This document shows positions 23,031-57,648 of a stretch of 64,000 bases of DNA, one piece after another. Origin of the DNA: Perna viridis. Lineage: Eukaryota. The position numbers and the translations under genes are program-made. The stretch covers positions 21,018,001 to 21,082,000 of the forward strand of contig CM074511.1 of the NCBI GenBank assembly GCA_037379345.1, in the 5' to 3' direction. The notes under the pieces were generated by a model that was given only the letters and a program-made list of their open reading frames with translations, had not been told where the DNA came from and searched no databases. Numbering within the stretch: position 1 is the stretch's first letter; every line of letters begins with the position of its first letter.

Positions 23031-23159
23031 TTAAATTCAGTCAACTCTTAGTAGTCACCAGAGTTTTGTGGCATATTGGTGTAAAATTTTCAATATCATG
23101 TCACAATGTTCTAGGTCACCTTTGGTGGAAAGCGTTATTTTTATGAAAATTGACAAAAA

Positions 23160-27100: not shown

Positions 27101-27293
27101 ATGAGCTGTACATCAATATCTATCCCTAACGGATATACCCACTCTGGAGTGAATCTATTCAATGTGAATGATACTGTAACTTACACGTGCAACACATTTT
27201 ATACCCTTTCTGGAAATGCCGTTGCTTCCTGTTTAAATGTTAATGGGACATGGTCCAGTATACCGTCCTGCAAGCTTGTCTTCTACGATAATG
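27101..27293 (+). CDS. Locus E, Sushi exon V1
   Basis: aacATG context. MSCTSISIPNGY...YTCNTFYTLSGNAVASC...WSSIPSC. 193 nt, phase-1 donor aatg|gtatgt. Confidence 0.88.
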
Positions 27294-29419
27294 GTATGTA
27301 CCTTTACATTTTTACATTTATATTTTTGTTATATCTGGTCTTCTACGATAATGTTATGTACATTTACATTTTTGTTATATCTTGGAAAGGCGTTTGCTTT
27401 ATTCTCTTCCAAAAATTATATTTATTTGAGTCATTTGTGTATTCTTTACAGCATGATTGAGAATTTAGTATCTACTATATAGGGATACTTTTTAAAAAGT
27501 AAGTAGTAACTGCTCGTTTGTTCAATGTTGGAGATATAAATACCACTATGCTAAAGATCTATCCTCAAATGATATATCAGCTCATTCGAAGAAAAAAATA
27601 TCAATATGGAGCGAGGACTGCAGTCTTGCTAGGATTATTATTACAAACGCAAAAATCCCAAATTCTTAAGTGTTAATATTTCGTAAATTTAGTCCTAACT
27701 GCAAAACATCTTTTGGAATATCTAGCAACATCCTCAGTACGATCGTGATCATAAATAAATCGTCGGTAGTTCATTAAGAACAAATATAAAATTGAATTAT
27801 CTGCAATAAGTCTGAAATCTATATTAGTTGCACCCATACTTTATTCAAATACATTTAATGCGTTTAAATATTATTTTTATGCATTTGCTTTATTAAAAAA
27901 TTAAGCGCGTTAAAATGTGAAATTAGATCATACAATTTAATTTTCAAATATGAAATATTTATTAATCCTGCGACAGTTTGAAAAAAACGATATGAAATTT
28001 ATTTTGACTGTCGCTGGCTAAGGCGAGGGAAGTCGGCTTTCATAGGTTGAAAACAGTGGCATGTCAGGCTTAGAAAAGGCTGTGGGTAGTGCATGACAAA
28101 TCTTCGCACATATTGTTTTCATAAAAATTTTATCTTCGTCATATCGCAAATGCATCCTTTTTGAAGTTGAATGTTGGTTTTTGATTAAATGCGACAGTTA
28201 AAGAAAAATGAATTAGAGAGAAAGGACTGACATTCATACAAAAAGGAAGAAAACTTCTTTCGTTTTATTCAAAATTTGGTTGCTTTCTTACAGAACTGTA
28301 AAATTGTTTTCTGAGCATCCATTTTCGATTTAAAAAAAAATCTTCGTACTATTGGACAAATATTACATTAGAACAAAATATTCGGTGGGATAAAATTTAC
28401 CATGTCCATCCATATCATAGGACTGCCTGAATTTCAAAATGGGAAGTCTCTTGATTTGTCTCCAGTTTGACAAAAAATGGATAAAGTAGAGTTCAAAAAA
28501 TGGTTGAAGAGAGAAGGGGATAACGTATAGTTTAAAAAATGGATGAAGAGAAAAGGGTTAACTTAAAGAGAAAATCTCACATTAAGTATATACATAGACC
28601 AAAGACAATGTAAAAAGAATGTTTAAGTATACTTGTATTGTATGAAGGAGTTATGATTAACAAACACAAATGGCATTCCAATGAGTCAAGTCTCTGCCCA
28701 TTTACTCATGACGATTTATTTTTCTATTCTAATATCGATGATCATCAACATGACCGCCCAGAAAGAAATGAAATGATTACGCTTTATGGAAACTGTTGAA
28801 ATTGTAATTAAAATAGTTTGCAGTACCCGTAAGTAGCTCACATATCGTTTGATTTACCCGACCAAACCACGAAGTCTCGAAGAATATTTTTTCTAAGGTG
28901 GTGACGTTGCCTCTTATTTTCAATGTTTTAATCATATCACATATATGTCATTTTATGTTTTTTTTTTGTTAATTTCAAATTAAGCTCTTTGATTTTATGC
29001 ATTTTTTTTTGTTTCCCTGTTTTTTGTATAATTATCAGTCTAATGACCTTTTAAATCAAACTGCTCATAACACCTGTGACCACTTGTAACGGTGTTTTGA
29101 AGATAAAACGATTTTAATCAATAGAAATTATTTATGAACGATATCAATAAGCTTTCAAGATGATCTTCTCAATTTTTTTGTTTGTTCTATCAGTATGATT
29201 GTTGTTTTAAGGAAGAAAGTTAAAATCTATCTGGATAAAATCAAATTCTATTTAAATGACATTGTTTAAAAAAGATGAGGATTTAACAAATGTGCTTTGA
29301 TTTAACCAATGTGTACAAGCTCATTTATATCAATTCGTCTGACAATAATATTACAAAAACAAATTCTGAAGCGTGAAGAAGAAGGCAAATCACAAACAAC
29401 TAAATCCTTGTAAATATCT

Positions 29420-30430
29420 ACTACGTAAAAACAGGAAACAAAGGTGATCTTCATGCACAAAACACATACAAATTCATTTATTTATAACAATTTACCTCTT
29501 GAAACTGTAACAGATTATACATATCTGGGTTTAACCATTAAATATAATGGAAATTTCAATTTAGCAATAGATATTTTGATTGACAAAGCTAGAAAAGCCT
29601 ATTTCAAAATTAAGAAAGTTATGGGATTAAACAACCCATGTAGACTTTTAGAGAAACTTTTTGACTCTTTGTTTTCTCCAATTATGCTTTACTGTAGTGA
29701 AATTTGGGGAAATGAATTACTTTTGAAGAATACATCAAATCACCTTGAAACAGTACATACTAAATTTACTACTTGGAGTCAACTGTAAATCTTACATTTA
29801 TGCTTGTCTTGCAGAGCTATGTAGATTTTCCCTGCAATGTAAAATCAATATTTCAATCATTGGATTTCTAAATCATATTTATTCCAATAATACTACTCTT
29901 TTATACCATTTTTATATTACAAAGGATTCAAATACTTGGACAACTAATAACAAAAGGTTACTAGATACCTTGGGCTTTGCCTATTTAATGAATAACCCAA
30001 GTGCACTAAAAATAAAGTTACCGATGATTAAACAAAGAATATCTGATCGATATTTACAAGAACAAAATTCATTTATCAGCAATTCTTCAAAATTATCTTT
30101 TTATAGAAAACTTTATAGGTCTGGAACTAGATCAAATTATATAGATGTTTTGTCTAAACTGGCCGAGATATCTATGATATCCAAAATAAAAATTAGCTCT
30201 CATCAGCTTATGATTGAGAGAGGAAGACACCACAATATTCCAAAAGACAATATAATATGCCCCGTATGCTATATTAACATTAAAGACGATGAACATATCT
30301 TATTTGAGTGTGATTTATACAACACACTAAGAGGTGAACTAACACTGAACTTCTTTATATAAAAACTTTGATACGTTTAATATTATAAAAAAAAACTAAG
30401 TATATTGTTTAACAGTAAAAATCCTAAATT
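29420..30430 (+). mobile_element. Decayed LINE ORF2 3' fragment
   Basis: YTYLGL...LFDSLFSPIMLYCSEIWG...SSHQLMIERGR...ICPVC...DEHILFEC, frameshifted near 29770. Confidence 0.85.
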
Positions 30431-30434
30431 ACTG

Positions 30435-30935
30435 TTTGTTTGTTTGTTAGGGTTTAACGTCCGAGCAGCTATATTTCAGCTATATTCAGACAATGAACAT
30501 GAAATGGATGATAAAATGAACATGAAATGAAAAAAAAAGGATAGGTCACAAGGATAGTAGAGTCGACAAATTTTGATTGCCACTGGAAAAAGGGGGGATG
30601 GGTAACGTCGGGCAATTTAGCCTCCTGTGGCGGAGCACAAAGGTTCCTACTCCTATCGAATACCACAGCTGGGTTCTTTAACGTGCGGGGAACGTGGCAT
30701 CTTTCCCAACACGGTGCACCACTATGATTTGCGGTCAGGTTTTCCGTATTATAGCCTGACAACCCCAGCATGTAACACGCCAGGGGTACCCCATTCCACC
30801 ACCTGGGGCACACATCCCAGTTGCTCTGTGGGCAGAACGCCTAGCCCCCGGCTAGGTTTCTGAGCACTATTTAGTCGCCTTATACGACAAGCTTAGCGCT
30901 GCTGCAGGCCTATTCTTTTAACACCCGGACCTGCA
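30435..30935 (-). mobile_element. SINE-like repeat (same family as 6330-7056)
   Basis: Reverse-complement homology over its whole length. Contains about one copy of the 53-bp unit and a (caaa)n tail. Confidence 0.75.
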
Positions 30936-30937
30936 AA

Positions 30938-31245
30938 CCATAATGGTGCACCATGTTGGGAAAGATGCCACGTTCCTCGCACGTTAAAGAAACCCTACTG
31001 TGGTATTCTCCCGGAGTAGGAACCATAGGGCTCCGCTACAGGAGGCTAAATTGCGCGACTCTACCCACCTTTCCCTATTTCCAGTGGCAATCAAAATTTG
31101 TCGAACCCATTGTCCTTGTGTCCCATCCCTTTTTCATTTCATCATCATTTCATGTTCATTTTATCATCAATTTCATGTTCATCGTCTGAATATAGCTGAA
31201 ATATTGCTGCTCGGACGTTAAACCCCAACAAAAAAACAAACAAAA
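30938..31245 (+). mobile_element. 5'-truncated SINE-like copy, inverted relative to its neighbour
   Basis: gatgccacgttcctcgcacgttaaaga...ctgctcggacgttaaacc followed by an (aaac)n tail. Confidence 0.75.
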
Positions 31246-32979
31246 CCACTTATTGTAACTGTGTTAGAGCTAAATAAAATATTTGTATTTGTATTTGCAC
31301 AATGTAGCGAACAGAATTAAAATACAGATACATAAAAACTGAAGACAATGAAAAATAGACATCACACAAAAAAACGAAACCACTTAAAATATGAATTCTC
31401 CCAAAAACGGAAGTAACATCAGGAATAGCATCCTGTGCTCCGGAATAGCAAGCGTACCCTGCATCGCAAGCGGCTCCCTCACATTGCAAACTAACCAAAT
31501 CTTGTAAACGTCAAGTTCGATGGTTTGCCTATCCGATAAGACGTAAAATCAAACTAAAGATATATTTATCTTGTCTCATCTGTGAGAAATAACCTTTAAA
31601 TCGGTCAACCAAATTTCAATGTCCACCATAAAACTAGTTTTGATATCTTATATAATATAATGATTGCTGTACAAAAGAAATTCACATGCTTTATAGTAAC
31701 AGAACAACTGTGAAATGTATACTCTATAGGTTGGGGATGTTGGTATATCGCCATCCTGACTGTAGACGGTAACAGTTGGAAAGTAAAATGTATCATATCT
31801 TTAGGTCCCCTGTTTTTTTATAGAACTTTGGTGAATATGATCCAGCACAGCCATGTAGAAGCGGTGTACAATTTTGTAAAAGCAAAAAATTAATATACTG
31901 TTACATTATCAGAAATAGTACCGATGTACGTTAGATCAGACCTATGATTGTTAATTATGGTCTCCTTAGGTAAAGGGCTACTGAATATATTGGGTTATTA
32001 CGTGTTCATGGTTTTTCAAGACCAATCCGAACTAAACATTCAATATCTTTTTTTTTTCGAACGATATTTTTAGGAGCTTTGTTTTCTTGTCCGACGCATT
32101 TGTCACGAAGGTCTAACAAAGTATTTTTACCTAAAGATCGTCAGAATAATATCTAATTTAAAATTTAAATATTTTTCATATATATATTTTCGTACATTAC
32201 TGGACAGGCGGTAATTTCTATATTCTCAGCTGCGCGTTGTAGCAGAAGAAGCAAAACTCGTACAAATCAAAATGAGCTTCTCTGGATTTATATCAATCAG
32301 ACATGTCAGTTGTGTTACTATATCTCATTACATAAAATCAGTCCGTTATGTTATAGACTTTTTTATTCTTCTCAACATTTATTACCTTTTAACTACACTT
32401 TATTTGAATTTAACAAATCTTTAAATTGAAACGTTACTCTCTTATTTTACAAATTTCTTGATATTGCAAATAAACACAGACAGTATTTGAATCCTTTAGA
32501 CCATTTATCTTTTGTATGAAAAGTTAAATATCTTCGATACTTTGCCAAGCGTCATGTGGATTTCCCCAAATACTCAAGTTTATTCAATTGCTTAAATCCG
32601 TGATCTATCTTAAATAGTAATTGGAGAAATAAATTATAAATACAAATCGCATTGAGTGTTTATATTTAAGTGAAAATAGCATTTTCCATAGCACTTGAAA
32701 AAATGTATGAACAGGATGGCAGCCTTAAAATATATAGTTGTCAATATATGTTGCATTAGGGCGAAGTATTGTGTTACTTGGAACGAAGTGATTACTTAAC
32801 GATAAATACTTATTTTATAGCTGAACGGTGTTTTGATAATGAGGCTACTTTAAGCCACTAATTAATATCATATAAGCTTTTTTAGGTCCATTTACAAATT
32901 ATCTTACCTCAGATAGGACATAGAATTGTTTCAAGCAACATAGGAATATAAATATACGTGTTGTCTTGATAAGAGAAAG

Positions 32980-33200
32980 AGTAATCTAGAGAACCAAGGT
33001 TATAGCGGTAATCAAAAAGAATGTAATCCAGGGACAAAGACCAGACATGGTCAATAGACATACATAACAAAGAACATAAAGTAACTAAAATTAAGTACAT
33101 ACAAAGTAACAAAAGCAAATGCGCAACTCGGACTCCAATTAAAACTGGGAGCATGGACCAGGTGCACCGGTAGAGTAAACGTCCTCTGCTTTTCTAGCAT
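32980..33200 (-). mobile_element. Solo 3' UTR segment of the Penelope-like family
   Basis: Matches 22810-23030 in reverse complement. Similar pieces at about 7710-7870, 38835-39045 and 55070-55322. Confidence 0.8.
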
Positions 33201-33565
33201 CCCTGAAAAAGACACCGAGTTGTTCATAAGACGGGTAAAAAGACTGTTGCTTTTACGAAAAGTGAAGGATTGTCGTCATTCGATTGTGACATGTTACGAT
33301 CTCAGATATATTAGATGAGTTAAAAAGTCCATATGAAATCGGGATTTCTTTATGACGTAAGAAAGCTCTTGTTATGTTCCAAAACTACATCTTAATTGAA
33401 AACCGTTATTGATGTTTGCTGCTCTGTTTAAGTGAAAAAAATGATGGGTCAGCGTGCTCGTTATAGAAATATTAGCATTTAAAATTTTGGTGGGAAAAAT
33501 GACTTCTCTTGATCTTCTATAGGTTTTGCCTTCGTCGGTTTTATCTATAAGAGGTAGCAAGAATT

Positions 33566-33613
<48 letters not shown>

Positions 33614-35029
33614 AATAACATTTAGATTTGTTATTAATGAAATTGTGAAAAGGAAAGTGTGAATCACAGGGCAAAACATATTAATGCTATGGAATGAATA
33701 AAAGCAAAAGAGCCCTAAAATCTTACAAAAAATTGAGCCATCGATATAAATCCGTCACAAAGTACAGTGACAGTTTTGTGGAATATTGGTAGGGCTATTT
33801 TAAAAAGAGCGCCTGGTTTATTGGAATATTGTTATCGCTATATTTTACCTAAGAAAAAAAATATATACAAGAAAATAGGATTTTAAAGTTTACATTATAC
33901 ATACATTTGTGGCTTATAGAGTTGTACCGGTAGTAATGTTTTTGAACTTAAATCTTTAGGTGCATAAACAGCTGTGTACTTAACCTTTTTTCTCAACAAT
34001 CTTAACAATCTCTGTACTTTAATGTAACAAAAATCACGCCCATGAAGCTAACTAAAACATACCTTGTAGCTACCTACACATAGAGCATCAGTAAAGTTTA
34101 ATTTAATTTAATTTAAAGTCCACTGTACACAAAGTATTAGAAGAGCAGGAAAGTCATTTGTTCGCCATGTTTAGAAAACTGATACGGTCAATTCATATCA
34201 ATACAATACAACATGTAAATATTTGGAAATTTACGTATGTAATTTCTGTAATATCAACATCTAAATAAAATATCAAACATGAAATTAGAGATAGAAGAGA
34301 TGATCTTCAATGGGCTTAGTTACCACTTTTATATCTGTAAACTTGTTCAATTATAGTATGTCCTCATCAAATATCAACATTACCCACAAAAAAAAGAAAT
34401 GTCTTCCTTTCAAATTAAGATATTTAACATTACCCTTTGGATGTCGGCAATGAATCTGACTGAACTAAATATTGACACACTCGCCATTCGTTAAAATGTT
34501 GTTTGACCTAAATCTGCAAGAAAACAGAATTGTGATAATGGTATTAAAAGGTGGTAGAGGTTACTTATGAGTAAAATGTTTTAATCGGCAATACATTCAG
34601 TTGGCGTTTTATATATATGGACACCAATAAAAACCACGATGTGATCAGTTCACGTTATAATACAGATATAGATACAGACAAAGTCTAGAAAAGAATTAAA
34701 AAAAAAAACAAAAAAAAAAACCTTTATCACATACCAAAAAGAAAAAAAAAGTATGAATAAAATGACTTTGTCTTAATGATAACAGTGTTTGACACGTATT
34801 GCGGAAAACTTCATTATTGTTGCTGATTACTACCGGATTATACTCACTTGTAATATGGCGGTTTCCACTGGCGGCGCATGCCATGAGCACCTGATGTTAC
34901 TCCCCGTTTTTTGTGGGAGTTCACATTGCTCCTATTTTATTTATTTGTGTGGCGTCTTTTCCTCTATCTTCAGTGTTTATGTGTATTTTTTTATTTGGTT
35001 CGCAGCATCGTGCATGTAGGTCGTCTCTG

Positions 35030-35325
35030 TTTCATGAGATCTGGGGCAACATCCTTCCAGCACCAGCGTATGGAGTTTTCATATCATAAATGAAACGTTA
35101 TGCCAGAGCAACTAAGTTGACTTTTTTGTACCGTACTAAACTTCTTACAATTAGGCTTCTGGAACATGGTTGTGTTGCAACGTCAAGAGTCATCACTACA
35201 GAACTATCATATTGGTTATTTAATTTTCTTTGTTGTGTGTGTCTGTTTTCCATGTGTGGTCTTTGTCCCTAGATTACATTAGTTTGGTTTCCACACTAGA
35301 ATCTTGCTTCCCTTGATTACTCTTA
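35030..35325 (+). mobile_element. Internally deleted Penelope-like 3' fragment
   Basis: GNILPAPAYGVFIS...RYARA remnant plus the family terminal sequence cccttgattactctt. Confidence 0.75.
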
Positions 35326-36242
35326 AACGTCTAGGCCAGAATGTGGGTTTTTGGCGTATTTGAACTATCCGACTGCTTACCCTTTTGTATATTTTGTCGA
35401 TATCTAAGCACATCGCAAATAGCTAGATATAAGAGGTTGATTAAAGCACCTTTGTCATGATATCTTAAATGCTTATAATAAAGCCATAATTTTGGGTTCT
35501 AGAAAAAGACGTCATTTTGAAATGAGTAGGAATTTTAAGTTCAGTCTGAAAAGCTCAAGAAATCCGAAAGCCCAAAAAAGACTACGATTTTATGAGCATA
35601 GCACATTGATTCGAAACTTCAAATAAATTGAAAATTGGTTGTCTGTAACTAAGTGAATATCAAATTTATTAGTTTATAGTTGCAAAATCAATTAAAATTT
35701 TAGAATTTTAATATTCTATAAGTTAAACTTGTCAAGGCTAGCTATTTATCGAAGCAACAGGATAGACAAACTCTAGAAAATCATACATCCTCTACGATAA
35801 AGCATTCTTTACATTTGTGAAAATAGCATAAAAAGGTGTACGATCCATTTATTAAGTGTTAAATGCAATATAGTTACCTTATTGAAATTATTCATACTAT
35901 TTATCTTATTAGCAAGTTATCAGTTAATGTCCTTTATTCTTTATCCTAAATTAAATTCTAATGATCAAATGAAAGGGTTATTGATCCTAAAACTTGTCAA
36001 CCAAAAAGAAAAATTTGCTTATGAATGATCGAAGATTAAGCACAGTTTGATTTGCTTAATACGATATTTCTGTGCAGTCAATACAGTGTTAAACATTTTG
36101 CTGTTTACAGGGACTGTATTTACAGAATGTCTACAGACTGTTGGAATTGATCATGATACATTAGACAAGCCTTTCTGTTATAGTGTAAACTACTTGTGAA
36201 TATCCAGTTCACGTGTTCTAAAATATTTCGAGATCCATAATC

Positions 36243-36435
36243 ATGAGTTGTACTGCTACTTCTATTTCGAACGGTTATATCTTGTCATCGACGCCGATAT
36301 ATCAAATCAACGAAACAGCCACATATTACTGTAATACATTTTATTACTTATCTGGTAATCCCGTTGCCACGTGTCTGGATCGCTATGGAAACTGGACATC
36401 TATCCCATCATGCAGTTTTGCTGCTACAAAAAATG
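36243..36435 (+). CDS. Locus E, Sushi exon V2
   Basis: atcATG context with an in-frame TAA at 36219. MSCTATSISNGY...YYCNTFYYLSGNPVATC...WTSIPSC. 193 nt, phase-1 donor aatg|gtcagt. Confidence 0.88.
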
Positions 36436-39400
36436 GTCAGTGATGTCTTTAACCAATTAAGATTTCGAATTATTATTCTAATTATTGTTCTTATTATTAT
36501 TTATGATATAGTAGTTTCACTAAAAGTTAACGCAGTTTACATTTTGATAACAAATTAAAAATTTAAGGAGTTAAGAAGAAATAAATGCTACCATATACTT
36601 TTAACAGTCATTTTAGGACACTATCAATTTTTGATATTGTGAAGAAATTTATACGAAGCAAGGTAAAGTAACGTCTTACAACTTACTACGGAAGAACCGT
36701 ATATACAAGGAAAAACTGATGAATTATAGGGAAGACAAAAATGTTGCAAATACGCTATTTCAGAGGAATTCAAACCTATGGTAAGATATTCTGCAATAGT
36801 TTTCTGTAATTGACTCGCGTAAGGTGTTTATGTATATTTTGCTTTCGCAAGCTCCTTAAACCCCAACAACCAATCAATCAAAGGAAAAGAGTTAAAATAA
36901 AAACGAAGGGTATCTCTGGTGAAAACTTTGACTATTATATACACAAAGTAATTTCATTTAATATTGATATAATTTTATACTGTCAATATGATTATTTTGT
37001 AGTACATAGATCTAAAAGTTGTTTTCGCTTTTGCAAAGATTTTTCACCTGCGCAACGTTTAGCACTAAACCACTCCTCTTTATGCAAATTAGTAAAGTAC
37101 AACGGAATTACTAATGCCTTTAATGTATTTCACACCCCGTATAGCAGAGCCTACAAGCTAGCGAAGTGATACACAGTAATCTAGGAAGCAGTTATATGTC
37201 TGCGGAGGAAATAGGGGTTAGGCCTTGTTGGGGTAATGTAACATTTGTAGTGACTTATTTGTGGAGTGAAAAGTACATCGTGCTGACCAATAGATATCAT
37301 CTAATGATATTTGGGGTTGTTTGAAGATTAAAATATATATGTATCCATAAACATTGTTCGTATTAAAATGCAAGCTCTGTTCAAAATAAGAAAAATATAT
37401 TTTATTCATATATCAGATTGACCAATGCAATGGAAAAAAAATCATGGAACGTTTGTAATACTCTAAATTGTCTGATACAAATATGAAACTATAAGATAGA
37501 GATAGACTGACGATTAAAAAAGTCCGAAATAATAAAACATTAAACACATATTTGTATTGTATAATAGTACAGTATGGCCCTTCATAGATGTTCATTGACT
37601 TTAAACAACACGTTATGTTTAGGTGCTTTAAAAGATGTCTGAAAATCATTGATTTGTTATTTTCCCGCACTATTTTGATGCAACGAAAGTAGTGTCCAGT
37701 GTCTGCACTGCAAGTTAATTGGATATTTTATCTATCATGACAATAACTGAGTGAATATTTCTTGTGCTCTCGTATTCAAAAATACAATTGTATGTATAAC
37801 TTCATCGGAAATTACAGGAAAATAACAAAAATTTTATAAATAACTTTTTAGTTATTTCCAATATCATATGATACACCATCAAAGTTAATAATGATATAAG
37901 CACGATTTGAGATACTTTAGAATAAAAACAAATGAGACTTTTTAAACTATATTGTATCATTGGATCCGTCCTCAACCTCGAAGACAATATCTCTTTGTTC
38001 AAGCTACGTCTTATTGTGTCCGAACAATTCTACATTGTGATGTTTTCTTAATGTATATCTGTATGACGCAATTAGAATGTTGTATTTTGTTTTGGTTTGT
38101 TTTGTTATATTTGGTATTAACTTTGTTTGTTTTTTTAACTTAAGAGAAACCGTTCAATTAAACTTCTTTCATAATTTTACTGAGATTTTGTTCATACTAT
38201 GTATATTGCTTTTAGAGGAAATTATTTATCGACAAATTGATTTCACATTCTCTAACATGACCTACCAAGTCGCCTATGATTTATTTGAAATTAAGCAACA
38301 TTTACTAAACCTAAAACATAATTTCTCTGGAGTCAATCAACATTAAATGTCTATTAACGCCCTGTGGCTATTACATGCATATCATGCTAAGTTTAAAGTC
38401 TATTCTGAGTACATAATCGAACCTTCACTACCACTATAACTAAAAAGTAATATCTTGAATTTTATTTCTAATGAGAATTGTGGTAAAGCTCTAAATTTTG
38501 CAAAAGATGCCTTTTGAAATACAAATAACACTTCATCGATAAAACAAAGTTTCCAGATAAATATAGAAGTTTAATCATGTCATAAAATGGTTACTATAGT
38601 TACATCTTTCCCCAAAAGGCACGGAGGAGTGCTAAATTAGAAATAAATATGTTTTCCAAAAGTTGTAAATTATAGTATGTAATGGCCTGTTTTTGTTCTC
38701 AATACAATATTCGACTGACAAACTTGGTAACCATTTTCTTTTTACGACTTTGCGATGTGAGCATAGCAATGCAAATAGTTACAAACAAATATATAATGGT
38801 CATGAAGTGTAAAAATTAAACTTTTTTCTAATCAAAGAGTAATCAAGATAACTAAGATTTTAGCGAAAATTAAAAGAATGTAGTCCAGGCAGAAAGACAA
38901 GACACACAACAAAGAAAGAAAAACTAAAATAACTCATACAAAGCAACAAAAGTACATGTACAAGTCGGACTCAACTAAAAACTGGGAGCATGGTGTACCG
39001 GTAGGGTAAGCGTCCTCTGATTATCTAGAAACACTCGCGAGTTGTAAAATTGTACCGTTTGCATAAAATAATCGCTAAAATAAAATTCATGCACTTTGGT
39101 GACAGTGGCAATGTGTAAATTGAGTTATAATTAAAAGATTGTATAACTCTATGTTACATAGTACATCAAATCAAGATATTAACAATAATGCCTATACTCA
39201 AAATCCAAATGTAAAATAAAGAAATGGGAACTTACGAAATAAAAAAGGAACATATAGAAGCCAAAGGAAAACAATAAGTAATAACAATAAGTTGTCAGAC
39301 AAAAAACGCAGACTTTGAGCAAATGAATACTAGAGAAAATTGAATAAAAGACGCTGGAAACTTTGAGGAATAAAATTCATAATAATTTAATTAAAATTCA

Positions 39401-41126: not shown

Positions 41127-41199
41127 ATTCTATCTTTAACCTGTTTTAATAAGAAGGACTAGTGACACATTATTTAGACACTGAAATAAGCTTAATATA

Positions 41200-42238
41200 T
41201 CCCTGCAGTACCAGCATATGGAGTGTTCATATCACAACTCATATGTTTTGCCAGAGCTTGCCTAAACTACGCAGACTTTTTGTATCGCGCTAGAACTCTT
41301 AACAAATAAGCTTCTGGAACAGGGTTATGATGCTACAAGATTGAAGTCATCACTACAGAAGTTTTATGGTCGTCATCATGAACTCGTGGATCGTTATGGT
41401 GTATCCATCTGCACCATGAAAACTGATTTATTCAACGGGTCATAGTTTTCCTTTCCTCGTTTGTCTACCTCGGACTTGACTTTTTACGAGCAACTCGGCG
41501 GGTGTTACTAGAAAAGCAGAGGACGCTTACCCTACCGGTTCACCTGGCCCATGCTCTCAGTTTTTAGTGGAGTCCAAGTTGATCATTTGCTTTTGTTACT
41601 TTGTATGTATGATTTTAGTTACTTTATGTTCTTTGTTGTGTATGTCTGTTTTCCATGTCTGGTCTTTGTCCCTGGATTACATTCTTTTGATTACCGCTAT
41701 AACTTGGTTCCCATGATTACTCTTTCAATGCGTCATAGTTGTCCTTTCCTCGTTTGTCTACCCCGGACTAGAAAACCAGAGGACGCTTACACTACCGGTG
41801 CACCTGGTCCATGCTCCCAGTTTTTAGTGGAGTCTGAGTTACTCATTTGCTTTTCTTGCTTTGTGTGTGTGATTTTTGTTGCTTTGTGTTCTTGTGTATG
41901 TCTGTTTTCCATGTCTGGTCTTTGTCCCTGGATTACATTCTTTTGATTACCGCTATAACTTGGTTCCCATGATTACTCTTTCAATGCGTCATAGTTGTCC
42001 CTTCCTCGTTTGTCTACCCCGGACTAGAAAACCAGAGGACGCTTACACTACCGGTGCACCTGGTCCATGCTCCCAGTTTTTAGTGGAGTCTGAGTTACTC
42101 ATTTGCTTTTCTTGCTTGGTGTGTGTGATTTTTGTTGCTTTGTGTTCTTGTGTATGTCTGTTTTCCTTGTCTGGTCTTTGTTCCTGGATTATATTCTTTT
42201 GGTTACCGTTATAACCTTGGTTCCCTTGATTACTCTTA
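41200..42238 (+). mobile_element. Penelope-like 3' fragment with three tandem 3' UTR units
   Basis: RT C-terminus (PAYGVFISQL...KFYGRHHELVDRYG), then three successive units of about 255-285 bp, each ending gattactctt. Confidence 0.88.
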
Positions 42239-43418: not shown

Positions 43419-44855
43419 TAAGGCATGTACTATAAAATGAAATGCCGATATAATTGTAAAAAAAAAACATGCGTGTTAGGAGAAACCTTGGAGATGCTTG
43501 AATTACAAAGGTACAGCCAACTTTTACTCTTGACAAGCAGGTACTAGTATTGAAATAAACATTGCTTTATATTTCCTATCTACCTGATTATAAAATTGAA
43601 ACTATAAAATGGCTTCCTCAGTTTAAGAAATTAGTCGTTAATTTAAACTATAATATCTCGTTTTTGGCGAGAACAAATGTTACTCATAGATGCGAAGCAA
43701 GACTTTTTTATGTTCAGACATATAAATTCTTCCATAATTTTACGATCCGTCAAATAGTCACGAATGCTCTTACATGACATTCGTTGGAATGTACAGATGA
43801 AATAATAATTCAGTTACTGGGATTCTTTTTACTTTGACTTTGTTTAGAACGGTATCTTTCTACACGTCATCTCGTTACACCATTTAGTATAAAGAGAGTA
43901 AGCACATATGTACATAAAAGAAACGAAAAATAAAAAAAAATTATATCTCAGAATCCTTGATTTCATTTAAGGCCTAGTCAACGTGATAACGGTCACATTG
44001 TTACTATGACAACGAGAATATTATTTTTATTATTTAAGTTAACTTTTATGTGAAATGTGATTTTATATAAAAGATACAAATAAACTTAATCAATTGTAAA
44101 ATTTAAACATACAGATATGTTAGCACGCACCTTTTTACCTTAAACATAAATGACTGGAGTATAAAATAGTTTTTGACTACTTACTCTTTCAAATGTATTT
44201 TCAACATGCGTGCCTAATTGTTCCACCTAATTACGATTGAATGTAAAATTGAAAGCATTTGAACCATAAATTTACTCATTCATTGTTAGCATGGTAGAGA
44301 GCCAAAGGTACAGGATATCATACGAAGTACTTTAGAATTTTATAAACACTTCTTTTTGTTTACAATATCTCCATGGAGAAAAGTAAATAAGGGTGTTTTA
44401 TATTTTGGCACTTAAACAGTCTGACCTAACGTTTACCGAATCTTTTATCCGAGCGTATAATTCGTGCATAATTTGTACTAACTGTTCAAAGCGTAGATGA
44501 GCCGTTTCGCTGTGTAACTATTTAACCATTCTAACTTTATTGCCTTATATCGAAACAAAATTACGAGTTCAAATTCTTTTTATTTTCGTGTAATTCTGTA
44601 GCCCAATTTAAATTTTGAACTTGTATCAATACATTTCAACTACCATAAATCCAGTTAATGTGTTTGGCACTTTTTAATCCTGAATTTAGATTACTGTGAA
44701 GAGGTGTCATGATATTTGGAAACGAGTCCTTAAGTTGAAAAGTGAAAAGGAAATTATTATTTGCTGTCTGGAGTCTAACTACATGAATTGGATTTGTTGG
44801 TGATGTTGGTGCACGTAAATTGTTGACTTAGGGATAGACTTCAGTTGGCACAAAA

Positions 44856-45048
44856 ATGACGACATGTACTCTACAGGCTTTAAGTAATGGATATGCAATA
44901 TCTTCGAAGAATCTTTTCAACGTGAATGACACAGTCACTTTTTCTTGTAACCAGTTTTACACGATATCTGGAAACCCGGTGGTTACATGTTTGGACACTG
45001 GTTCATGGTCAACGCTACCATCGTGTAAATTTTATACTACAGATAATG
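44856..45048 (+). CDS. Locus E, Sushi exon V3
   Basis: aaaATG context with an in-frame TAG at 44835. MTTCTLQALSNGY...FSCNQFYTISGNPVVTC...WSTLPSC. 193 nt, phase-1 donor aatg|gtgaga. Confidence 0.88.
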
Positions 45049-48000: not shown

Positions 48001-49575
48001 CTGAACTAAAGATGGATTACCTTAAATAACGACTTCTGGACAAGATTGCCTCTTTGGTCTTTCATCTTCAACTGAATTAAATTGTTATCACAACAGCTAC
48101 TCCACTTGAAATACCTGCATTACCAAGCAGCAGCTCACAAACAGCCCACAACCGACTTTGAGATTCAAAAAGCCATAATACGTAGCCATTACTCAGACAA
48201 GGGAAGAGATCATTTAGTGGAACAGATTGAAGGACTTTCGTAACTTGTAAAGAATCTGGGCCTGCGACAAGTTACGTTTTCTGTTTCAAAACGTGGTGAA
48301 AATATCTCTATATATTAAAACAGGAATGAACATTTCTTTAGACGACCATGGTATTAATAGATAAATGTATTTGTCAGCATACCCTCGACTGTTGCAACAC
48401 AATTGGCGACAAATTCGATGCAAAACGAAAGAACATTGATTCATTTCATCCCAAAGAGATCAAATCAGTGTTTTCAGCACGAAGTGATCACCAATGGCAA
48501 TACATTTTACGAGACATGCAGTATCATTAACTGTAATAAAGTGATGATTGTTCGCTATTCTTTGAGGATTAAATTGATTTGTTTTAATTAAAACATTATT
48601 CAGTGAATATCTATATTTGTAGTGACGAATTTGTACAAGTGACTTGAAATTGAAATTTTGAAAAATTCTTGAAATTCATTAAGTTTCTCATGTTTGCAAA
48701 GTACAAAATCATATTTTTCTACTCAAATAGCCTGTAGATATTTTTCTATCTATCTATGTGAAACACAACAACAATTTATAAAATGCTTATTTGATTGATT
48801 CATTGACAATGTCGTTCTGAATGATTCATGATTTTTATTGCTTTATGGATTTATGTACTTTAATTATTGGTTCCGTTTAAGCTTGATAATATAGTAACCT
48901 ATCTAAGCGAAATCAGTATCATTTTCATTCTTTGGTAATTGATATGATTATAAGTAAAAATGATAATGTATCTTTATAATTGTGGTGCTTATAGATAAAA
49001 TATTATAAAATTCGAAAAGTAATTAGCATATACAAAAGTTAGTAGTCTCGTATTTCAGATAGGTCATGAAGCTTTATACGGCGAAACACACCACTTATAG
49101 ATTTGCCACTCAGCCATTTTAATACATGTACCATTTGATATTTGACAACCTTACAAAGAGTAAAGCATTTCCCAATGACAAGTTTGTCAAATTGTCAAAA
49201 CAAGAGATAAAATTTCGTTAAACTTTAATTTGGAGACTGCGTATAAATACAAAATTTATTTGGCGATTTGAAAAGACAAAAAGATAGATAAATATGCAAA
49301 ATAAATGAAAACAATAATATTGAATGGAAAAACTGCGAACCCTGAACATAAAACAAAATTATAATATACTTTTATACATTTACTTATTTAAAATAAAGAA
49401 TTATTTTTCATTCTACGAAATGAGAATATGGGGGAGGGTCAAACGAGTGGTTCGTTGATTGGTCTTTTCATTTTAATATGCAAGGAGCTAGGATACAATA
49501 AACCGTGCTGAAGCCAAGCGCTCGGTGTATTGGTTTAGATTTACCTCCGATAAATAATACTTGGAAATATATCCA

Positions 49576-49827
49576 TACACAGGCAAAATTATTTCTAATG
49601 AATTTCATATGATTTTCACCTGAATTGAGCAAATAAACTAAGTGACAGAGTTCACGTGAAATTCGGGTGAATGGAGCCTTCACACGAAATTCACACGAAA
49701 TGTTCACATAAAATTTGTGTTTAGTGAATTTCATATGAAAATCATGTTAATTTCATGTGAATTTTACATGAATTTCACGTGAAGCTCGATTAACATGAAT
49801 TTCACGTGAAAAATATTTGCCTGTGTA
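49576..49827. mobile_element. MITE with TA-flanked TIRs
   Basis: tacacaggcaaa ... tttgcctgtgta. The interior is built from ttcacgtgaa/ttcatatgaa palindromes. Confidence 0.7.
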
Positions 49828-52800
49828 CCTTAAGGTTTGCATTTTTTAACACAATGTCGAAGCAGTTCTTGATCTAACGAATTTATGACATATGTATCAA
49901 CAGAGAAATCCTTTCAAGAATGTTAAATGTATGACTTTTGTTATCGTAAATGAATAGAAATATGCAAATCATGCTGAGATTTTATTAATACTTTTATTTG
50001 TTTTAACAATGAGATATAACTTTCAATCCCTCGGAATCCATTTCTTCAAAGAGGTACATGATTTAAATGCAAGCACTTACATTAGATACGAAGTAATTGC
50101 ATACTGTGTATAATATGAAGTTTAAAGAAAACAATTTAATTATACTTTATTGCTATGTGTGTACGATAATTTTTTTTTACTTCGCACACAATGAAAGTGA
50201 ACAGTTTTGCAGTAGATGTTTCATGCTCGTTATGGTTTTTCTGCTCTTTAATTTTATCTCATTGGAAAAAATAGTTAATTGTAAAAAATAGTAACTTTAA
50301 ATCAGCTTTCCCTTAGTATTTTGTTTTGGTTTTGTGGTTTCATTAAGATCCATACAAGGATCTCTTTCGTCATACATTGCCGTCCGTCCTTTTGACGATT
50401 TTGTATCACTTTCCAGGATATCATCAGGTAGGACATGGGCAATACAGCGCATGTTTCCAGAAAGTAGGTATTGCTTTTCTCATGGTTCGCCAGTTTATAT
50501 GCGTTGATTGTTCTCTACATTATTTTTTTAATTATGATTAAAAATTACAATAAAAATAATAATCATAATCATAATAGTTTTAAGTTCAAAGGTCAAGGCA
50601 CAATATGTTTTATCAATTCTCTGATTTCATTATATTGACTCTGTCCCTTTATTACCGTGGTATTTTAGTATCGTTCATATACCTTACTTTCATATTTAAC
50701 AGTTTTGCATGTCATGACCGAAGTACAATTGAATCGGTAAAAACAAGAAATTCTTGCATATTGCGTGCATGCATAGGAATAAAATTTATTACAATTTTGT
50801 TGATAAACTGTATTCCTAGGTTGCACAGTGATGTCAATATTTCAACGTTAATAACTGAAGTTTTTGCATGCATACTTGAGCGATTATAATTAAGCTATGG
50901 ACTGTTTAAACATCCTATAATTGTACTGCATAAAGCTGCAAAACATTTATCAATCCAATGACAAAGTCCTTTTTCTAAAATAAAAACCGTGTTGACTTGA
51001 TATTTACATGGACCATATAGAAAAAATCAAGTGTTCGAACTTGCACTAAACTTTATTCACCCAGCTATATATAAAACTGTGAGTTAACGGAACTATTCAG
51101 GATTTGAATTAGAAAATTTCTGCTTTTTTTCTATGTGTTACACATAATTTGGAACCGAATGTCTGAAAAGAAAACAATAGGACACTGACCCTACCAGTAC
51201 ACCTGATACATGTTCTCAGTTTTGAATGAAGTCCTGTATTTTATATTATTTTTGTGTTTTGTATTGGTTCCTTCACTTTAGGTGGTTAATGCTTACCAAA
51301 GAGGTTGCTGATTAAAAACAGTAAAAATAGTGAACGTATATATATAACGTCTCAGAATGTGACGACTCTATTTGCTACACTGCTCCATCTGATCAAATTG
51401 ATACAGGCAAGATAAAGTCAGCATAGAAGGGTCTGAAAATTTCCTAACAATGTTAGAACTGTCAAATTTGTGCCGCTGTGACATCTCTAAACGACTCCGC
51501 CAGCTAGGGGGCTGGACTTTGTGCAGGCGGTGTTGTCATAGATGTTTTTTAAAGTAAATCCACAGAGTTGTACATTTCATTCAAAAGTGACTCATCTAAA
51601 ATTGAGCGTTGATCTTTTAAAGCGTATTGATTTTTTGTAGTATTAAGTACCAATCCATATAACATTCAGGCACTGCCAAAAGTAGAGGTAATTCTTGGTG
51701 CAGAAAATGCCAACAAACAATGGATGCTTTTTCAATCTCCATACGCCATTTTCATATGTAACTATAGTCTTTTTCTGTATTCAGAACTACATTTTCGAGA
51801 AAACTGTACATTCATCTATCATTCAATTCACCAATATATTTTAAAATGTAAATTTAATATACTGTATGCTGGACGAATATTTTGTACAATGAACTTGATA
51901 TGATTTGATTCACCAACTTCAAAGTGACAATTTCATACGCAATCTATGAAATATTTATCTAAAAAAAAAAGCAACCACCGAATAACATGTGTTACTTTGA
52001 CTGACCAATTTTTCAAAAGCTTTAATTTCATATTTTAATCTTGTGAACAAATTATCTTAAAAAAGAAGTGAGGCGTGATTAACACAGTGTAATTTTACCC
52101 CATTCTATTAAAACTTGAAACTTGAAACAACAGATATAAGTTACAATTTTGTCGAATCTGGCATTCCAAAATAGTGTCATTAATGAAGGTGTCCCATGTT
52201 TGTACATAGTATACGTTTTTTTTCTTTTACCTTTATTAAAAAAAATAGTTTTTAACTTGTTTAGGAGTTTAACTTTTAAACGAAAGAAACTTTTTACATC
52301 TATAATAAAACAATTTATATCTGTGAATGGATTTCAAATTACAATTATGTAAAATAATTATGGAACGTAGCTATCTGAAAGGGACCGATATGCTTGAGAA
52401 AATATCGTTTAACAGTTACAATATGTAAGTAGAAATTTTGGGTCATTGTCGATATCTGATATATTTCTTTTGCAAATTATAGTGACAATACTTCTTTTCC
52501 TATCATATTCTGCGTCTATTCTGGAAAACTAAAAATATGAAAAATGTTTTGCATTGCCAAATCCAACACGACAGAGAAAGTATATCGAAGACTAATGCAA
52601 TGGAAATAAGAGGGATATGCCAGTGAAGCTGTCAAATATGGTTTCAATTGTCAAATGTAATGTGACCAAAAAGAGATTCTTGGGAATTTCCGTTAGTCAA
52701 ATGGTCGAAATAGGATTCGTTTCAAATTCTTAACAGCATCACTGACATCAATAAGTTACGAATTATATAGAACTTCTTTGTTGGCATTTAAGGTGTTTCG

Positions 52801-52987
52801 TTAAGAAATATAACTCTTGATGTGCTTCACTAAATAGAATTCAATGCATTAATGTCTAATGTCAGATAATCAATTTAACTCACGAAAAATATAATAAAAC
52901 ATATGATTGATTATATCAAACGTATTAGTTAATTCAGTCAATTTGTTATAAAATTATATCAAGGCAAATTTTGGGTGAAAACAATAG

Positions 52988-54340
52988 GTAATCAAGGGAA
53001 CCAAGGTTATAGCGGTAATCAAAAGAATGCAATCCAGGGACAAAGACCAGACATGGAAAACAGACATATACAATAAAGAACATAAAGTACCTAAAATAAT
53101 ACATACAAAGTAACAAAAGCAAATGAGCAACTCGGACTCCACTAAAAACTGGGAGCATGGACCAGGTGCACCGGTAGGGTAAGCGTCCTCTGCTTTTCTA
53201 GTAACACCCGCCGAGTTGCTCATAAAAAGTCAAGTCCGGGTGGACAATCGATGAAAGGAAAACTATGACCCGCTGAATAAATTAGTTTTCATGATGCAGA
53301 TGGGTACACCATAACGATCCACGAGTTCATGATGACGACCATAAAACTTCTGTAGCAACATAACCCTGTTCCAGAAGCTATTTGTTAGAGTTCTAGTGCG
53401 ATACAAAAAGTGTGCGTAGTTTCGGCAAGCTCTGGCATAACATATGAGTTGTGATATGAACACTCCATACGCAGGTGCAGAAGGGACGTTGACAATTCTG
53501 AATGAAAAGTCATCACGTTGGTCGTAAAGTTTGGTCAATAGTTTTCCTTTACCATCGATTTCTAAGTTTTGGTCAAGATATGACTTCACAGTGTCTGTAG
53601 TATCCTTTATCTCAAGTTCTTTTAGGTAGATGCAATGTATCAAATCCCCGAAATTAGGATTGTTTAAAGATAATACGTCATCTATATAGCGGAAACTCAG
53701 ATTGAAGGATCTAGCCAAACGATATTCTTTCTTTCTGATCAGATCAGCTATAAAGTCAGCCTCATAAGAGTGAAGGAATAGGTCAGCAAGTAAAGGAGCA
53801 CAATTTGTTCCCATTAGAATGCCGACCGTTTGTTGAAAAACACGTCCACTGCTATTATTTTCTACGTCTACCTCTGATAATAAACATTGGACGTAAAACG
53901 TTTTGCAGACAAAAACAATGTTGTTTTGGGCTTTGACTGCTGGTACGACAACATATTTTTCATGTATAGTAGACATTTTTTTTCCTACATCGGGGTCTTT
54001 AAAAATTGATGTAGCCTTGGCACTCATTGGCCTACTTAACACTTTCATTCGTTTCAAAATTAAAGACGATCTGCTGTCAGGTTCGGGCCTATTTATACTT
54101 TTTAAACCTTTTTATAGAAGAGTAAAGGAATAGGTTAGCAAGTAAAGGAGCACAATTTGTTCCCATTGGAATGCCGACCGTTTGATGGAAAACACGTCCA
54201 CCACACTGGACAAATATGTTGTCGATTAAAAATTCCAGCATTTTGTAAACATCTTCCTCTGTATATTTGGAAGATGAATTGGAATTGTTTCTTACAAAGT
54301 ATGAGGAATCTCTACCAAGAATTATATATTTGTATCTAGG
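52988..54340 (-). mobile_element. Rearranged Penelope-like retroelement
   Basis: ORF 53263-54057 carries MGTNCAPLLADLFL and FRYIDD but has an internal deletion. The segment around MGTNCAP recurs at 54120-54340. Confidence 0.88.
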
Positions 54341-55069
54341 TTATTTATCCAAAACATGAAAATGCAAAGATGAAGACATGTAGGAAATGTAGAAAAACAC
54401 ACAGCAAACTAAATTTGTTTAATTATTCAACTAAGGAAAATGCATCAATAATCATATCTTTAATTTGTTTATTAACAACATTCACTTTTAACCTATTTTC
54501 TGTGGCAATTACGCAATGTTGCAAGTACAAAAATGACATCAATAAAATAAGGAAATGAAGTAACCAGAGAAATATCATTTATTAAAACCTGGAGAAAGTA
54601 AATGGTCTCCTTTATCATTTATTACATTTCAACAGTATATATGCATTTATTTTGATTACTTTTAATCGAAAGTCATTTTAATTTGTATAGCCTTGCCTTT
54701 CAAACATAATCTACTTTTGTTATTATAGAAAATATAAAAATATCAAACTTTTCATGGTTAAGATTTAATTCGATAACAGAAAGTAGCAAATAGTTTTAAT
54801 TTTAGAAAGGACAGTCTAAAATAATAATGTTTTATTGGTCTAGATTTTTACAAAATAATATTGCTCTACAAAAGAACATTAAAAATTGCTTTTTGTACGA
54901 CATTGACTGGTGTGTCTTATCTTTCAAGCAATAGTGGGAAAAAAGAGGAACTTGTTCTTGGGAATTATAATTTCTTTGCGTTACCCAAACTATCTCATAA
55001 GTCGAATTATCTGATTTATTATTCCATATTTACATGAACCATTTGAGTTAAACAATTCAAGAATTTCCT

Positions 55070-55322
55070 CTTTCGTCTACCCTGGACTTGACTTTTTATG
55101 AGCAACTCGGCGGGTGTTTCTAGAAAAGCAGAGGACGCTTACTTTACCTGGTCCATGCTCCCAGTTTTTAGTGGAGTTGCTCGTTTGCTTTTGTTACTTT
55201 GTATGCATTATTTTAGTTACTTTATGCTCTTTGTTGTGTATGTCTGTTTTCCATGTCTGGTCTTTATCCCTGGATTACATTCTATTTGTTACCGCTAGAA
55301 CCTTGGTTCCCTTGATTACTCT
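55070..55322 (+). mobile_element. Solo 3' UTR segment of the Penelope-like family
   Basis: Near-identical to 22770-23030. Confidence 0.8.
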
Positions 55323-55591
55323 TCCTTCAAAGTGTCAATATCACGTATAATCTATAAAGTTTTATCTCAAAAGTGCAACAACTTAATGAAAACTATAACT
55401 GATATGTGGTATGTAACAAACTGAGAAATAAGATGGGCAAATAACAACCTTTAATACTCAAAAAATCAGTCTGTCTGGTGCTTTTCATTATCTTTTGGTC
55501 TTTGGAAGTAAAATTCGTTACACTTTTGTCTTGTAATGGTTTTTAATTCAAGATGTTACTTTATTTATTACTATCATTGATTTATTTTCAG

Positions 55592-55682
55592 TATGGTTTT
55601 GGATGACAGTTGGTCTTGCATCACTCTTGGCTCTGGTATTGTTACTGATACTACTGTTATTCCTTATAAGATACTGTTTTTG
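55592..55682 (+). CDS. Locus E transmembrane exon (candidate shared/constant exon)
   Basis: tttattttcag| ... tg|gttagt, 91 nt, phase 1 to 2. Encodes VWFWMTVGLASLLALVLLLILLLFLIRYCFC. Confidence 0.88.
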
Positions 55683-56454
55683 GTTAGTAACAATTAAAAC
55701 AGTAAATATTTACTTTTATTTCTATGTTTCTTACCCAATGGTGGTTGTCGATTTTAATAAATTATCAAAATTAATTTGTGATTACAGGTACATAAACTTT
55801 ACTTTATGACTTTAATTTTGTAATTTGGTAAAAGACATTGCTTAACTTTTACGCTTAGAATCCCTAAAAAGAAGCCCAAATCTCACATATTTTCATTTCG
55901 TGTCTCGCTCCGAATACATTTATTACATATTCCGATACATCTGTAAATATTGTTGAGACCGTTTTGACCACCAGTATGTTTACACACATTATTATTCTTT
56001 ATCGATTCTACGGACGAAAATTAACAACCTCGTTGGCTTGTTAAAAAATTAGATATAAGAATTTGAAAAAGTAATGTTAAACATTGTTTTTTACGCGGGA
56101 AAATAACATATATCTGTTTGTTTACCCAATCAGCTGGTGGTGCGAGTAAATAATGCTACAATAAGGATAATCCTATCTAAGGAAATACTGTCTGTAGTTT
56201 TCCAAATCGAAAGGGAAATACTACTGGTTTTGCAAAGGTGAAAAATAAAGTAAAATTTTGACATTTGTTGGGATAAGTTTGGGAAAATGTAGTTCCGTGA
56301 TTTTGAAGGCACCCTGTGTAAATATGAAAATATATTGGGAAAAAATATTTTTAAAAAATGTAATAACATTGATTTTCCAACAAAAGGTTTACCTTCAGTA
56401 GAAAAGTTGAATCCGGTTAGATGTATTGTGAAATAGATTTTCAATCTTTTTTAG

Positions 56455-56851
56455 CCACAAACGAAAAAGCCGGGTTTCAGAATTTATAGAAAGTCAAGAC
56501 AGATATGGAGATTCTTGTGGACCTTGTTGTGGTTTCGTAGACTACAAGGGATGCTGTTCTCTCTTCGGTTGTTGTGGATTCTTTGGATGTTGTGGTGGTT
56601 TTTGTGGTTGTTGCCGATGTTGCCGAGAGTTTCCAGGGGACACTGGTCCGGAATCATCAAACCATAATAATGTCAACCAACAGGGCAATAAACCAAGGAA
56701 AAAGAAAGTGTCCGTCAGGCAAACACAGACTTCACCGACGCCTACAGATTCGTCATATATACACGACGAAAAGAAGAAAATAGCAAAGGTCCTTAATGCT
56801 TGGATGCCACATTCACATACTGTACGAAACATAAACACCAGCACAAAATGA
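56455..56851 (+). CDS. Locus E tail exon T1 (Cys/Gly-rich); V+TM+T1 gives about 226 aa
   Basis: tcttttttag|, phase 2, matching the TM donor. Encodes HKRKSR...GPCCGFVDYKGCCSLFGCCGFFGCCGGFCGCCRCCR...RQTQT...AWMPHSHTVRNINTSTK-TGA. Confidence 0.88.
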
Positions 56852-57022
56852 ATTATGACAAAGAACAAACCAGAACAGAACTATTGCCCTGAACAAGTTA
56901 TAGTTCGAAAAAATTAATGTTAAAGTTTTATAGTAGTATGAAAACTATTAGCATCTCAACTTTTTCTAAATTTGAATATGATATGTTTATTTATCGCACC
57001 GCAGTCCATTTTTTACAGGATG

Positions 57023-57053
<31 letters not shown>

Positions 57054-57420
57054 TTCAAAATAATATAACTTATCTTCTCCTTTCATGGTTATTGGGCATT
57101 CTTCTCTTTTTGCTTCTGGCAATCTTTTTTTTTATGTATTTCATCAAAGTGAATGTCGCATCAAGAAATTACAGGTTCTTTAGTGTTTCGATCGATTATT
57201 TTTTATAAAATTTACAAATCTTCAAAAAGAACTACTTACGAAAATGTTAATCATAGAAACTTCCTGCTTTACGATAGTCTATTGAAGCATGCAATATTCT
57301 TACTTCGCTTTTTGTGCAACTTTTTTCTGGTTTCGGTTTACACACTCGTGTTATTTAACGCACCCTAGCTAGTTCCTAATGTGGTGTATAGTCACACTGT
57401 CTATTTCATTCTCGTTTCAG

Positions 57421-57648
57421 ATGGACGGGGTATATATTATTTCTAATAACATTGATTCTACACATATTGTAAAACAGAAACCGAAGAAAGTTCATACGTC
57501 TGCTACACAGACCTATCCCATGTCACGTGATTTAGAAAATTCATTTGTGACACAGGAAAAGGATAATAAGAAGAAAACCGCCAAAGTTTTAAAAGCTTGG
57601 ATGCCTCATACACACGATCTCCGAGCAATAAATACCAGCACGAAGTAA
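57421..57648 (+). CDS. Locus E second tail exon T2 (splice partner unresolved)
   Basis: Strong acceptor ctatttcattctcgtttcag|, phase 0. Encodes MDGVY...SATQTYP...KKTAKVLKAWMPHTHDLRAINTSTK-TAA. Confidence 0.75.
   Translation: MDGVYIISNNIDSTHIVKQKPKKVHTSATQTYPMSRDLENSFVTQEKDNKKKTAKVLKAWMPHTHDLRAINTSTK

Follow-up and report, generated by a model that had tools for sequence, protein, structure and literature searches.

Introduction

How can three Sushi exons, each with its own start codon, be expressed when a single transmembrane (TM) exon lies downstream of all of them? The question is raised by a locus of the mussel Perna viridis that lies in a stretch of 64,000 nucleotides (assembly GCA_037379345.1, contig CM074511.1, positions 21,018,001 to 21,082,000, forward strand). 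This whole stretch is referred to below as the window, and all positions are window positions unless another locus is named. An initial annotation of the window had suggested that the three exons, here termed V1, V2 and V3, provide alternative ectodomains that are spliced onto one shared membrane anchor. The follow-up analysis described here makes it very likely that the region from 26.9 to 57.8 kb is one gene with multiple variable first exons and a set of constant exons (Table 1).

Exon structure of the locus

The coordinates, donors and Sushi content that had been assigned to the three V exons agreed with those determined here. The coding part of each exon is 193 nt long (64 codons plus one base) and ends in ..AATG followed by GT, with the donors reading GTATGT (V1), GTCAGT (V2) and GTGAGA (V3). 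Each exon encodes 64 residues, which include four Cys and a Trp. A Sushi/CCP module was defined by a length of about 60 residues, four Cys, a conserved Trp and a Pfam score above the gathering cutoff; V1, V2 and V3 matched PF00084 with E-values of 1.8e-10, 2.5e-9 and 4.7e-12, respectively, at 37.8-46.6 bits (gathering cutoff 20.7). The pairwise protein identity among the three exons is 51-57%, close to the value of about 55% estimated before. The final GATAAT(G) is common to V1 and V3 only, V2 having only AAT(G) in common with them. In-frame stop codons are located 5' of the start codons at 27050 (V1), 36219 (V2) and 44835 (V3), at exactly the positions given earlier. The layout is thus that of a multiple-variable-first-exon gene: the exons are tandem paralogues with their own ATGs, and there are no constant-type exons between them. 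A 60-bp tandem duplication at 27278-27383 extends across the 3' end of V1, donor included; its second copy reads AATG|TT, not AATG|GT, and therefore only the first copy is a donor.

Searches by tblastn and a six-frame motif scan confirmed that no TM exon and no NTSTK tail lie between the V exons and that the first TM exon after them is the one at 55592-55682. TM or tail exons were not detected anywhere between 17 kb and 55.5 kb. With the same methods, TM starts of the type seen in this family were found in the window only at 8184, 12825 and 55591, and the tail motif W.PH...R.INTS only at 751, 10233, 14826, 16601, 56801 and 57598. A weak TM-like match at 50489-50542 was rejected, as it is AT-rich, has a stop codon nearby and is without splice context.

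The TM exon is preceded by a pyrimidine tract and an AG, and encodes a hydrophobic segment that opens with VWFW and is followed by basic residues. The next constant exon, tailA, encodes a basic juxtamembrane stretch, a Cys-rich cluster, a linker and the ..INTSTK end. Its internal phase-0 donor, which reads ..AAG|GT, joins 57421, the first position of the alternative terminal exon tailB, which sits within the 3' untranslated region (3'UTR) of the short form. Direct splicing of the TM exon to tailB was rejected: the phase 2 of the TM exon and the phase 0 of tailB together give a TGA stop. TailB is reached via the tailA donor after 56788. Of the earlier proposal of two tails on one anchor, the use of both tails therefore stands, and the direct attachment of tailB to the TM exon does not. 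The predicted products have about 226 residues when tailA is read through and about 281 residues when tailB is joined; these lengths are arithmetic on coordinates, the window exons having been searched separately, and agree with the 226/228- and 282/283-residue isoforms of relatives described below. TailB is the counterpart of the last approximately 76 residues of the 282/283-residue Mytilus isoforms.

The start of tailB (57421-57460, MDGVYIISNN) resembles an internal stretch, MDVTGNVFYINHQN, of the single tail exon of the paralogues. The long form may represent the ancestral colinear tail, and the ending of the short form a duplicated C-terminal motif. A Pfam search of tailA and tailB matched no family, and an ESM Atlas search with the TM segment and tail yielded sub-threshold matches only, plus one unnamed molluscan Sushi cluster.

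Table 1. Features of the variable-first-exon locus and of related genes in the window
Feature	Position	Strand	Description
Alternative first exon V1 (coding part)	27101..27293	+	ATG, Sushi domain, phase-1 donor after 27293
Alternative first exon V2 (coding part)	36243..36435	+	ATG, Sushi domain, phase-1 donor
Alternative first exon V3 (coding part)	44856..45048	+	ATG, Sushi domain, phase-1 donor
Constant exon 1, TM segment	55592..55682	+	Phase 1 in, phase 2 out
Constant exon 2 (tailA)	56455..56851	+	Own ..INTSTK end; stop 56849-56851; internal phase-0 donor after 56788
TailB, alternative terminal coding exon	57421..57648	+	Phase-0 acceptor; ..INTSTK end; stop 57646-57648
V1 promoter block	26910..26952	+	Inverted CCAAT (CTATTGG) and TATA-like AGATATTTAAA; ~150-190 nt 5' of V1 ATG
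Conserved non-coding block, candidate V3 promoter or 5'UTR	44353..44690	+	Aligns with region upstream of M. californianus V3-type exon
Compact paralogue	Sushi ~7321, TM ~8184, tail to 10280
Compact paralogue	Sushi 12174, TM 12825, tail to 14873
Compact paralogue	Sushi 15254 with own TM, tail to 16648
Tail of a further family gene	652-798		Window start

Transcript evidence in Perna viridis

RNA contigs from four runs, which come from four studies (X1, X2, X4 and X11), were aligned to positions 55300-57800. In fourteen putatively RNA runs, 0.38-0.60 of the words sampled from 55592-57648 were present; exons make up 0.62 of this interval. The GT..AG joint 55682>56455, which connects the TM exon to tailA, was present in four of the four aligned runs, and the contigs therefore derive from spliced RNA. 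The GT..AG joint 56788>57421 between tailA and tailB was present in three of the four, and contigs that read through tailA cover 56759-57015.

The 5' side of the TM exon provided the direct link to a V exon. The TM contig extends in the 5' direction by 109 letters in run X4 and by 76 letters in run X11, and the last 30 of these letters are the 3' end of V1. The junction 27293>55592, which the initial annotation had put forward for checking, was thereby found in two runs, with the end of V1 abutting the TM exon directly and V2 and V3 skipped. The loose end of the RNA carries bases located 5' of the V1 duplication; the junction is therefore formed from the first copy.

For X1 and X2, the 5' end of the TM contig is located exactly 6 letters before 55591. 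The TM contigs of these two runs also end exactly at 56788, the other proven branch, which indicates that the contigs break at branch points. Since the suffix that V1 and V3 have in common is 6 letters long, the start is as predicted for a branch between V1 and V3. The position of this break makes it probable that the junction of V3 to the TM exon (45048>55592) is in use.

Orthologous loci in other mussels

A search with the tailA exon matched a 228-residue protein encoded on an RNA-type contig of a related mytilid, in which a V1-like Sushi module, the TM segment and tailA follow each other in one open frame. This mRNA consists of a 5'UTR and the first V exon, spliced to the TM exon and then to tailA. 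A genomic contig of the same mytilid holds three intact 64-codon Sushi exons spaced 3.8 and 5.0 kb apart; the TM exon is located 11.4 kb after the third V exon and is followed by tailA and tailB. A search with the TM segment plus tail matched RefSeq models of three Mytilus species, namely M. californianus LOC127707718 (isoforms X1-X5), M. trossulus LOC134728063 (isoforms X1-X3) and three M. edulis isoforms (XP_071133702/710/718). In each Mytilus gene, the only difference among the isoforms from the TM segment onward is the long or short tail; all other differences are confined to the first 64 residues, which are V1-, V2- or V3-like. The P. viridis V exons are 62-84% identical to the Mytilus exons; for V2, the identity is 83-84% with its V2-type counterparts in the related mytilid and in Mytilus isoform X3.

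The M. californianus locus comprises four intact V exons and one decayed copy, all upstream of one TM exon. The decayed copy, of V1 type, is found inside the array at 30803-30983 of that locus and carries stop codons as well as a frameshift; it illustrates the natural appearance of a V exon that is not in use.

Upstream regions and splice acceptors

The block at 26910-26952 is kept upstream of the V1-type exons in the related mytilid and in M. californianus. The mRNA contig of the related mytilid starts a few tens of bases after that species' own TATA-like element, and the mRNA is colinear with the genome from approximately 215 nt 5' of the first ATG to the donor. The V3 block at 44353-44690 (about 340 nt) has a counterpart upstream of the M. 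californianus V3-type exon, and this region aligns in turn with the sequence that precedes the third V exon in the related mytilid. Given these upstream matches, the third exon of the related mytilid is the positional counterpart of V3. No promoter element shared by every V exon was seen. Separate promoters for V2 and V3 are presumed.

A different arrangement would have one promoter for all isoforms and a common non-coding leader, followed by the V exons as internal exons of which only one is included at a time. Such a leader would suit the weak AG sites present upstream of V1 and V3, and the start sites of V2 and V3 are unmapped. It is nevertheless a distinctly improbable arrangement, as the 5'UTR of the related mytilid is contiguous with the V1-type exon, behind the conserved CCAAT/TATA block, and V3 has a conserved upstream block of its own. 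The V2-type exons of three out of three species have no phase-compatible AG, although a non-coding leader would not need to be in phase. For V2 of the window, no phase-1 AG was found between the upstream stop and the ATG, which bears out the earlier statement that V2 is without a usable phase-1 acceptor.

The V exons might also be strung together, V1 to V3 or V2 to V3, to give two-Sushi proteins. A candidate for the acceptor needed, the phase-1 'cag' that had been flagged at 44844, is indeed present in frame upstream of V3 at 44842-44844. This site, however, is not conserved in position or quality in other species, no two-Sushi isoform is among the annotated isoforms of four species, and the end of V1 is joined directly to the TM exon in runs X4 and X11. 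Of the alternatives weighed here, tandem joining of Sushi exons is the least probable.

Selection on the V exons and their use

In a tree of the 64-residue modules, V1 forms a clade with its counterparts in other genera (support 99/98), as does V2 (support 100/99), and V3 is nearest to the Mytilus V3 type, without strong support. In comparison with the related mytilid, the nonsynonymous difference (pN) is 0.14 for V1, 0.11 for V2 and 0.21 for V3, and the synonymous difference (pS) is saturated at 0.81-0.87 (0.81 for V2), which gives a pN/pS of about 0.14-0.24. The V exons are under purifying selection. N-glycosylation sequons are type-specific and conserved (N23 and N48 in V1, N23 and N50 in V2, N23 only in V3), and in V2 and V3 the ATG, the four Cys, the Trp, the sequons and the donors are preserved from genus to genus. 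Because pN lies far below the saturated pS and the decayed M. californianus copy provides the contrast, these data, together with the orthologous clades, argue that all three V exons have been kept in use by purifying selection and are not relics, in agreement with the previous view that they are not dead orphans.

The opposite view would be that only V1 is used in P. viridis and that V2 and V3 are unexpressed leftovers of tandem duplication, their TM and tail exons having been lost. V1 is the only V exon whose junction to the TM exon was read directly, no conservation upstream of V2 is detectable in the window, and the spacers between the V exons are full of transposon debris, including reverse-transcriptase fragments and a short dispersed repeat. 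An unused exon, however, would be expected to look like the M. californianus copy with its stop codons and frameshift, whereas V2 and V3 retain all the features listed above with low pN at saturated synonymous sites. In addition, V2- and V3-type exons are annotated as isoform first exons in three Mytilus species, and the contig break in runs X1 and X2 fits the use of V3. That V1 alone is in use is consequently considered improbable, if less so than a shared leader.

Several points weigh against the interpretation of the locus as one gene with three first exons in use. The junction of V2 to the TM exon (36435>55592) was not seen in the four runs examined; a V2 branch predicts a contig start 3 letters before 55591, not 6, and the 6-letter start makes it unlikely that such a branch is abundant in X1 and X2. 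The V3 junction rests on the position of one contig break, which a heterozygous site at 27286 could mimic. Upstream of V2 in the window, the block that precedes the V2-type exons in both the related mytilid and M. californianus was not found. The RefSeq isoforms are computational models. The proposal that three ectodomains share one anchor is largely upheld: the V1 transcripts and the same architecture in other mytilids speak for it, use of V3 is probable from the contig break, and use of V2, unseen in these runs, is suggested by the orthologous isoforms.

Proposed mechanism and predicted product

In variable-first-exon genes, transcription from the promoter of one variable exon makes the donor of that exon cap-proximal (PMC1885805, PMC3325998, PMC7811963). 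For the gene with multiple variable first exons favoured here, the three tandem first exons would each encode a whole ectodomain, consisting of a Met directly followed by one N-glycosylatable Sushi/CCP module. V1 very probably has its own promoter, and V3 probably has one too. When transcription starts at one V exon, the phase-1 donor of that exon would be used and joined to the single TM exon, which is followed by the Cys-rich tail. V exons located further downstream would be removed with the intron, being skipped because they are without acceptors. The internal donor of tailA offers a second choice at the 3' end, between read-through (about 226 residues) and the splice to tailB (about 281 residues).

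The initial Met directly precedes the first Cys of the Sushi module, there is no signal peptide, and the in-frame stops lie upstream. An acidic residue stands before the TM segment and the sequence RYCFCHKRKSR after it, and the N-x-T sequons are conserved. Because of the missing signal peptide, the acidic and basic residues on the two sides of the TM segment and the conserved sequons, the product is probably a type III (N-out) membrane protein with an extracellular Sushi module. The juxtamembrane Cys cluster is probably palmitoylated, as far as can be judged from sequence. The C-terminus WMPH..R.INTSTK is conserved. A role in recognition or adhesion is a guess from the domain type.

Paralogues and repeats

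Upstream of 17 kb the window contains compact paralogues with their own Sushi, TM and ..INTSTK tail exons within 1.4-3 kb (Table 1). One exon set per gene is the default of the family, and the 27-58 kb locus is the exception; the compact paralogues look like the ancestral state of one gene with one exon set.

The variable-Sushi design is not unique to the 27-58 kb locus. About 10.6 Mb away on the same contig (10412823-10446011, minus strand) a paralogous locus contains five Sushi exons of types A, B, A, A and B, all of which end in a phase-1 G|GT donor and precede one TM exon and one tail exon. One of its A-type Sushi copies is without the conserved Trp and may be decaying. For the M. edulis counterpart of this locus, two isoforms are annotated, with the Sushi exon as their only difference. 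In Ostrea edulis LOC125657228, two Sushi first exons 1.35 kb apart precede one tail exon, and the isoforms X1 and X2 match this structure.

A self-comparison of the window revealed no 9-kb segmental duplication between the V exons at the DNA level, but dispersed repeats only. A repeat of about 220 bp occurs at 7710-7876, 22814-23031, 32975-33197, 41507-42237, 52988-53202 and 55120-55323, in both orientations and with 76-95% identity, including three tandem copies at 41.5-42.2 kb. It often adjoins reverse-transcriptase fragments (22152-22751 and 53263-54057) and probably belongs to a retroelement. Short tandem repeats, with units of about 50-55 bp, form arrays at 6415-6732 and 60160-60469.

Comparison with known systems

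The clustered protocadherins (vertebrate PCDH alpha/gamma) resemble the locus in having tandem paralogous variable first exons that encode the ectodomain and are spliced to shared constant exons, and in both the protocadherins and V1 the downstream variable exons are skipped. The variable exons of PCDH, which number 14-22, include the coding sequence for the TM segment and for part of the tail, whereas here 3-5 variable exons, each with one Sushi module of 64 residues, share a constant TM segment. Cadherin repeats are absent from the V exons, PF00084 being the only Pfam match. The locus works like a protocadherin cluster, yet is no member of that family.

Genes of the UGT1A/GCNT2 type (PMC1885805, PMC3325998) likewise have multiple variable first exons that arose by tandem duplication, pseudo-exons included; these genes, however, encode enzymes and have a large variable exon, whereas the gene described here encodes a small putative receptor or adhesion protein. 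The shortened Dscam of chelicerates (sDscam, PMC9258826) is similar in that ectodomain diversity in an invertebrate is generated by alternative promoters and first exons, not by internal mutually exclusive exons. It differs in its Ig domains, its 50-100 isoforms and its demonstrated homophilic binding, the locus described here being known from sequence and RNA contigs.

The closest relatives are the orthologues and paralogues with the same exon design, LOC127707718, LOC134728063, M. edulis XP_071133702/710/718 and LOC125657228, all of which are labelled 'uncharacterized protein'. Literature searches on Sushi alternative first exons in bivalves, on variable and constant exons in invertebrates and on the NTSTK motif yielded no description of the family or of the design. 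The earlier impression that the arrangement is undescribed for single-Sushi proteins thus holds for published papers, but not for automated annotations, in which the isoforms of relatives already sit unremarked. The gene itself very probably is a new member of the multiple-variable-first-exon class.

Significance

To our knowledge, variable-first-exon arrays that swap ectodomains are rare outside the vertebrate protocadherins, UGT1A and the chelicerate sDscam. The locus adds a compact, conserved molluscan case with three to five choices and a variable module of 64 residues, which is experimentally tractable, although the diversity is low at three to five variants. As compact paralogues with one exon set adjoin it in the same window, it also lends itself to the study of how tandem gene duplicates give rise to promoter choice and cap-proximal splicing. 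For annotation, the lesson is that the orphan Sushi exons of this locus are not to be equated with pseudogenes, and an uncharacterised family of bivalve receptors is flagged for functional work.

A broader reading, which is put forward tentatively and is itself rather unlikely, is that pteriomorph bivalves have a family of small single-Sushi type III membrane proteins in which arrays of 2-5 variable first exons systematically diversify the ectodomain while the palmitoylated anchor and the tail stay constant, that these arrays have been maintained since before mussels and oysters diverged, and that their promoter choice is specific to cells or conditions. If true, it would constitute a recognition code similar to that of the protocadherins or sDscam, or a set of immune receptors similar to complement-control proteins.

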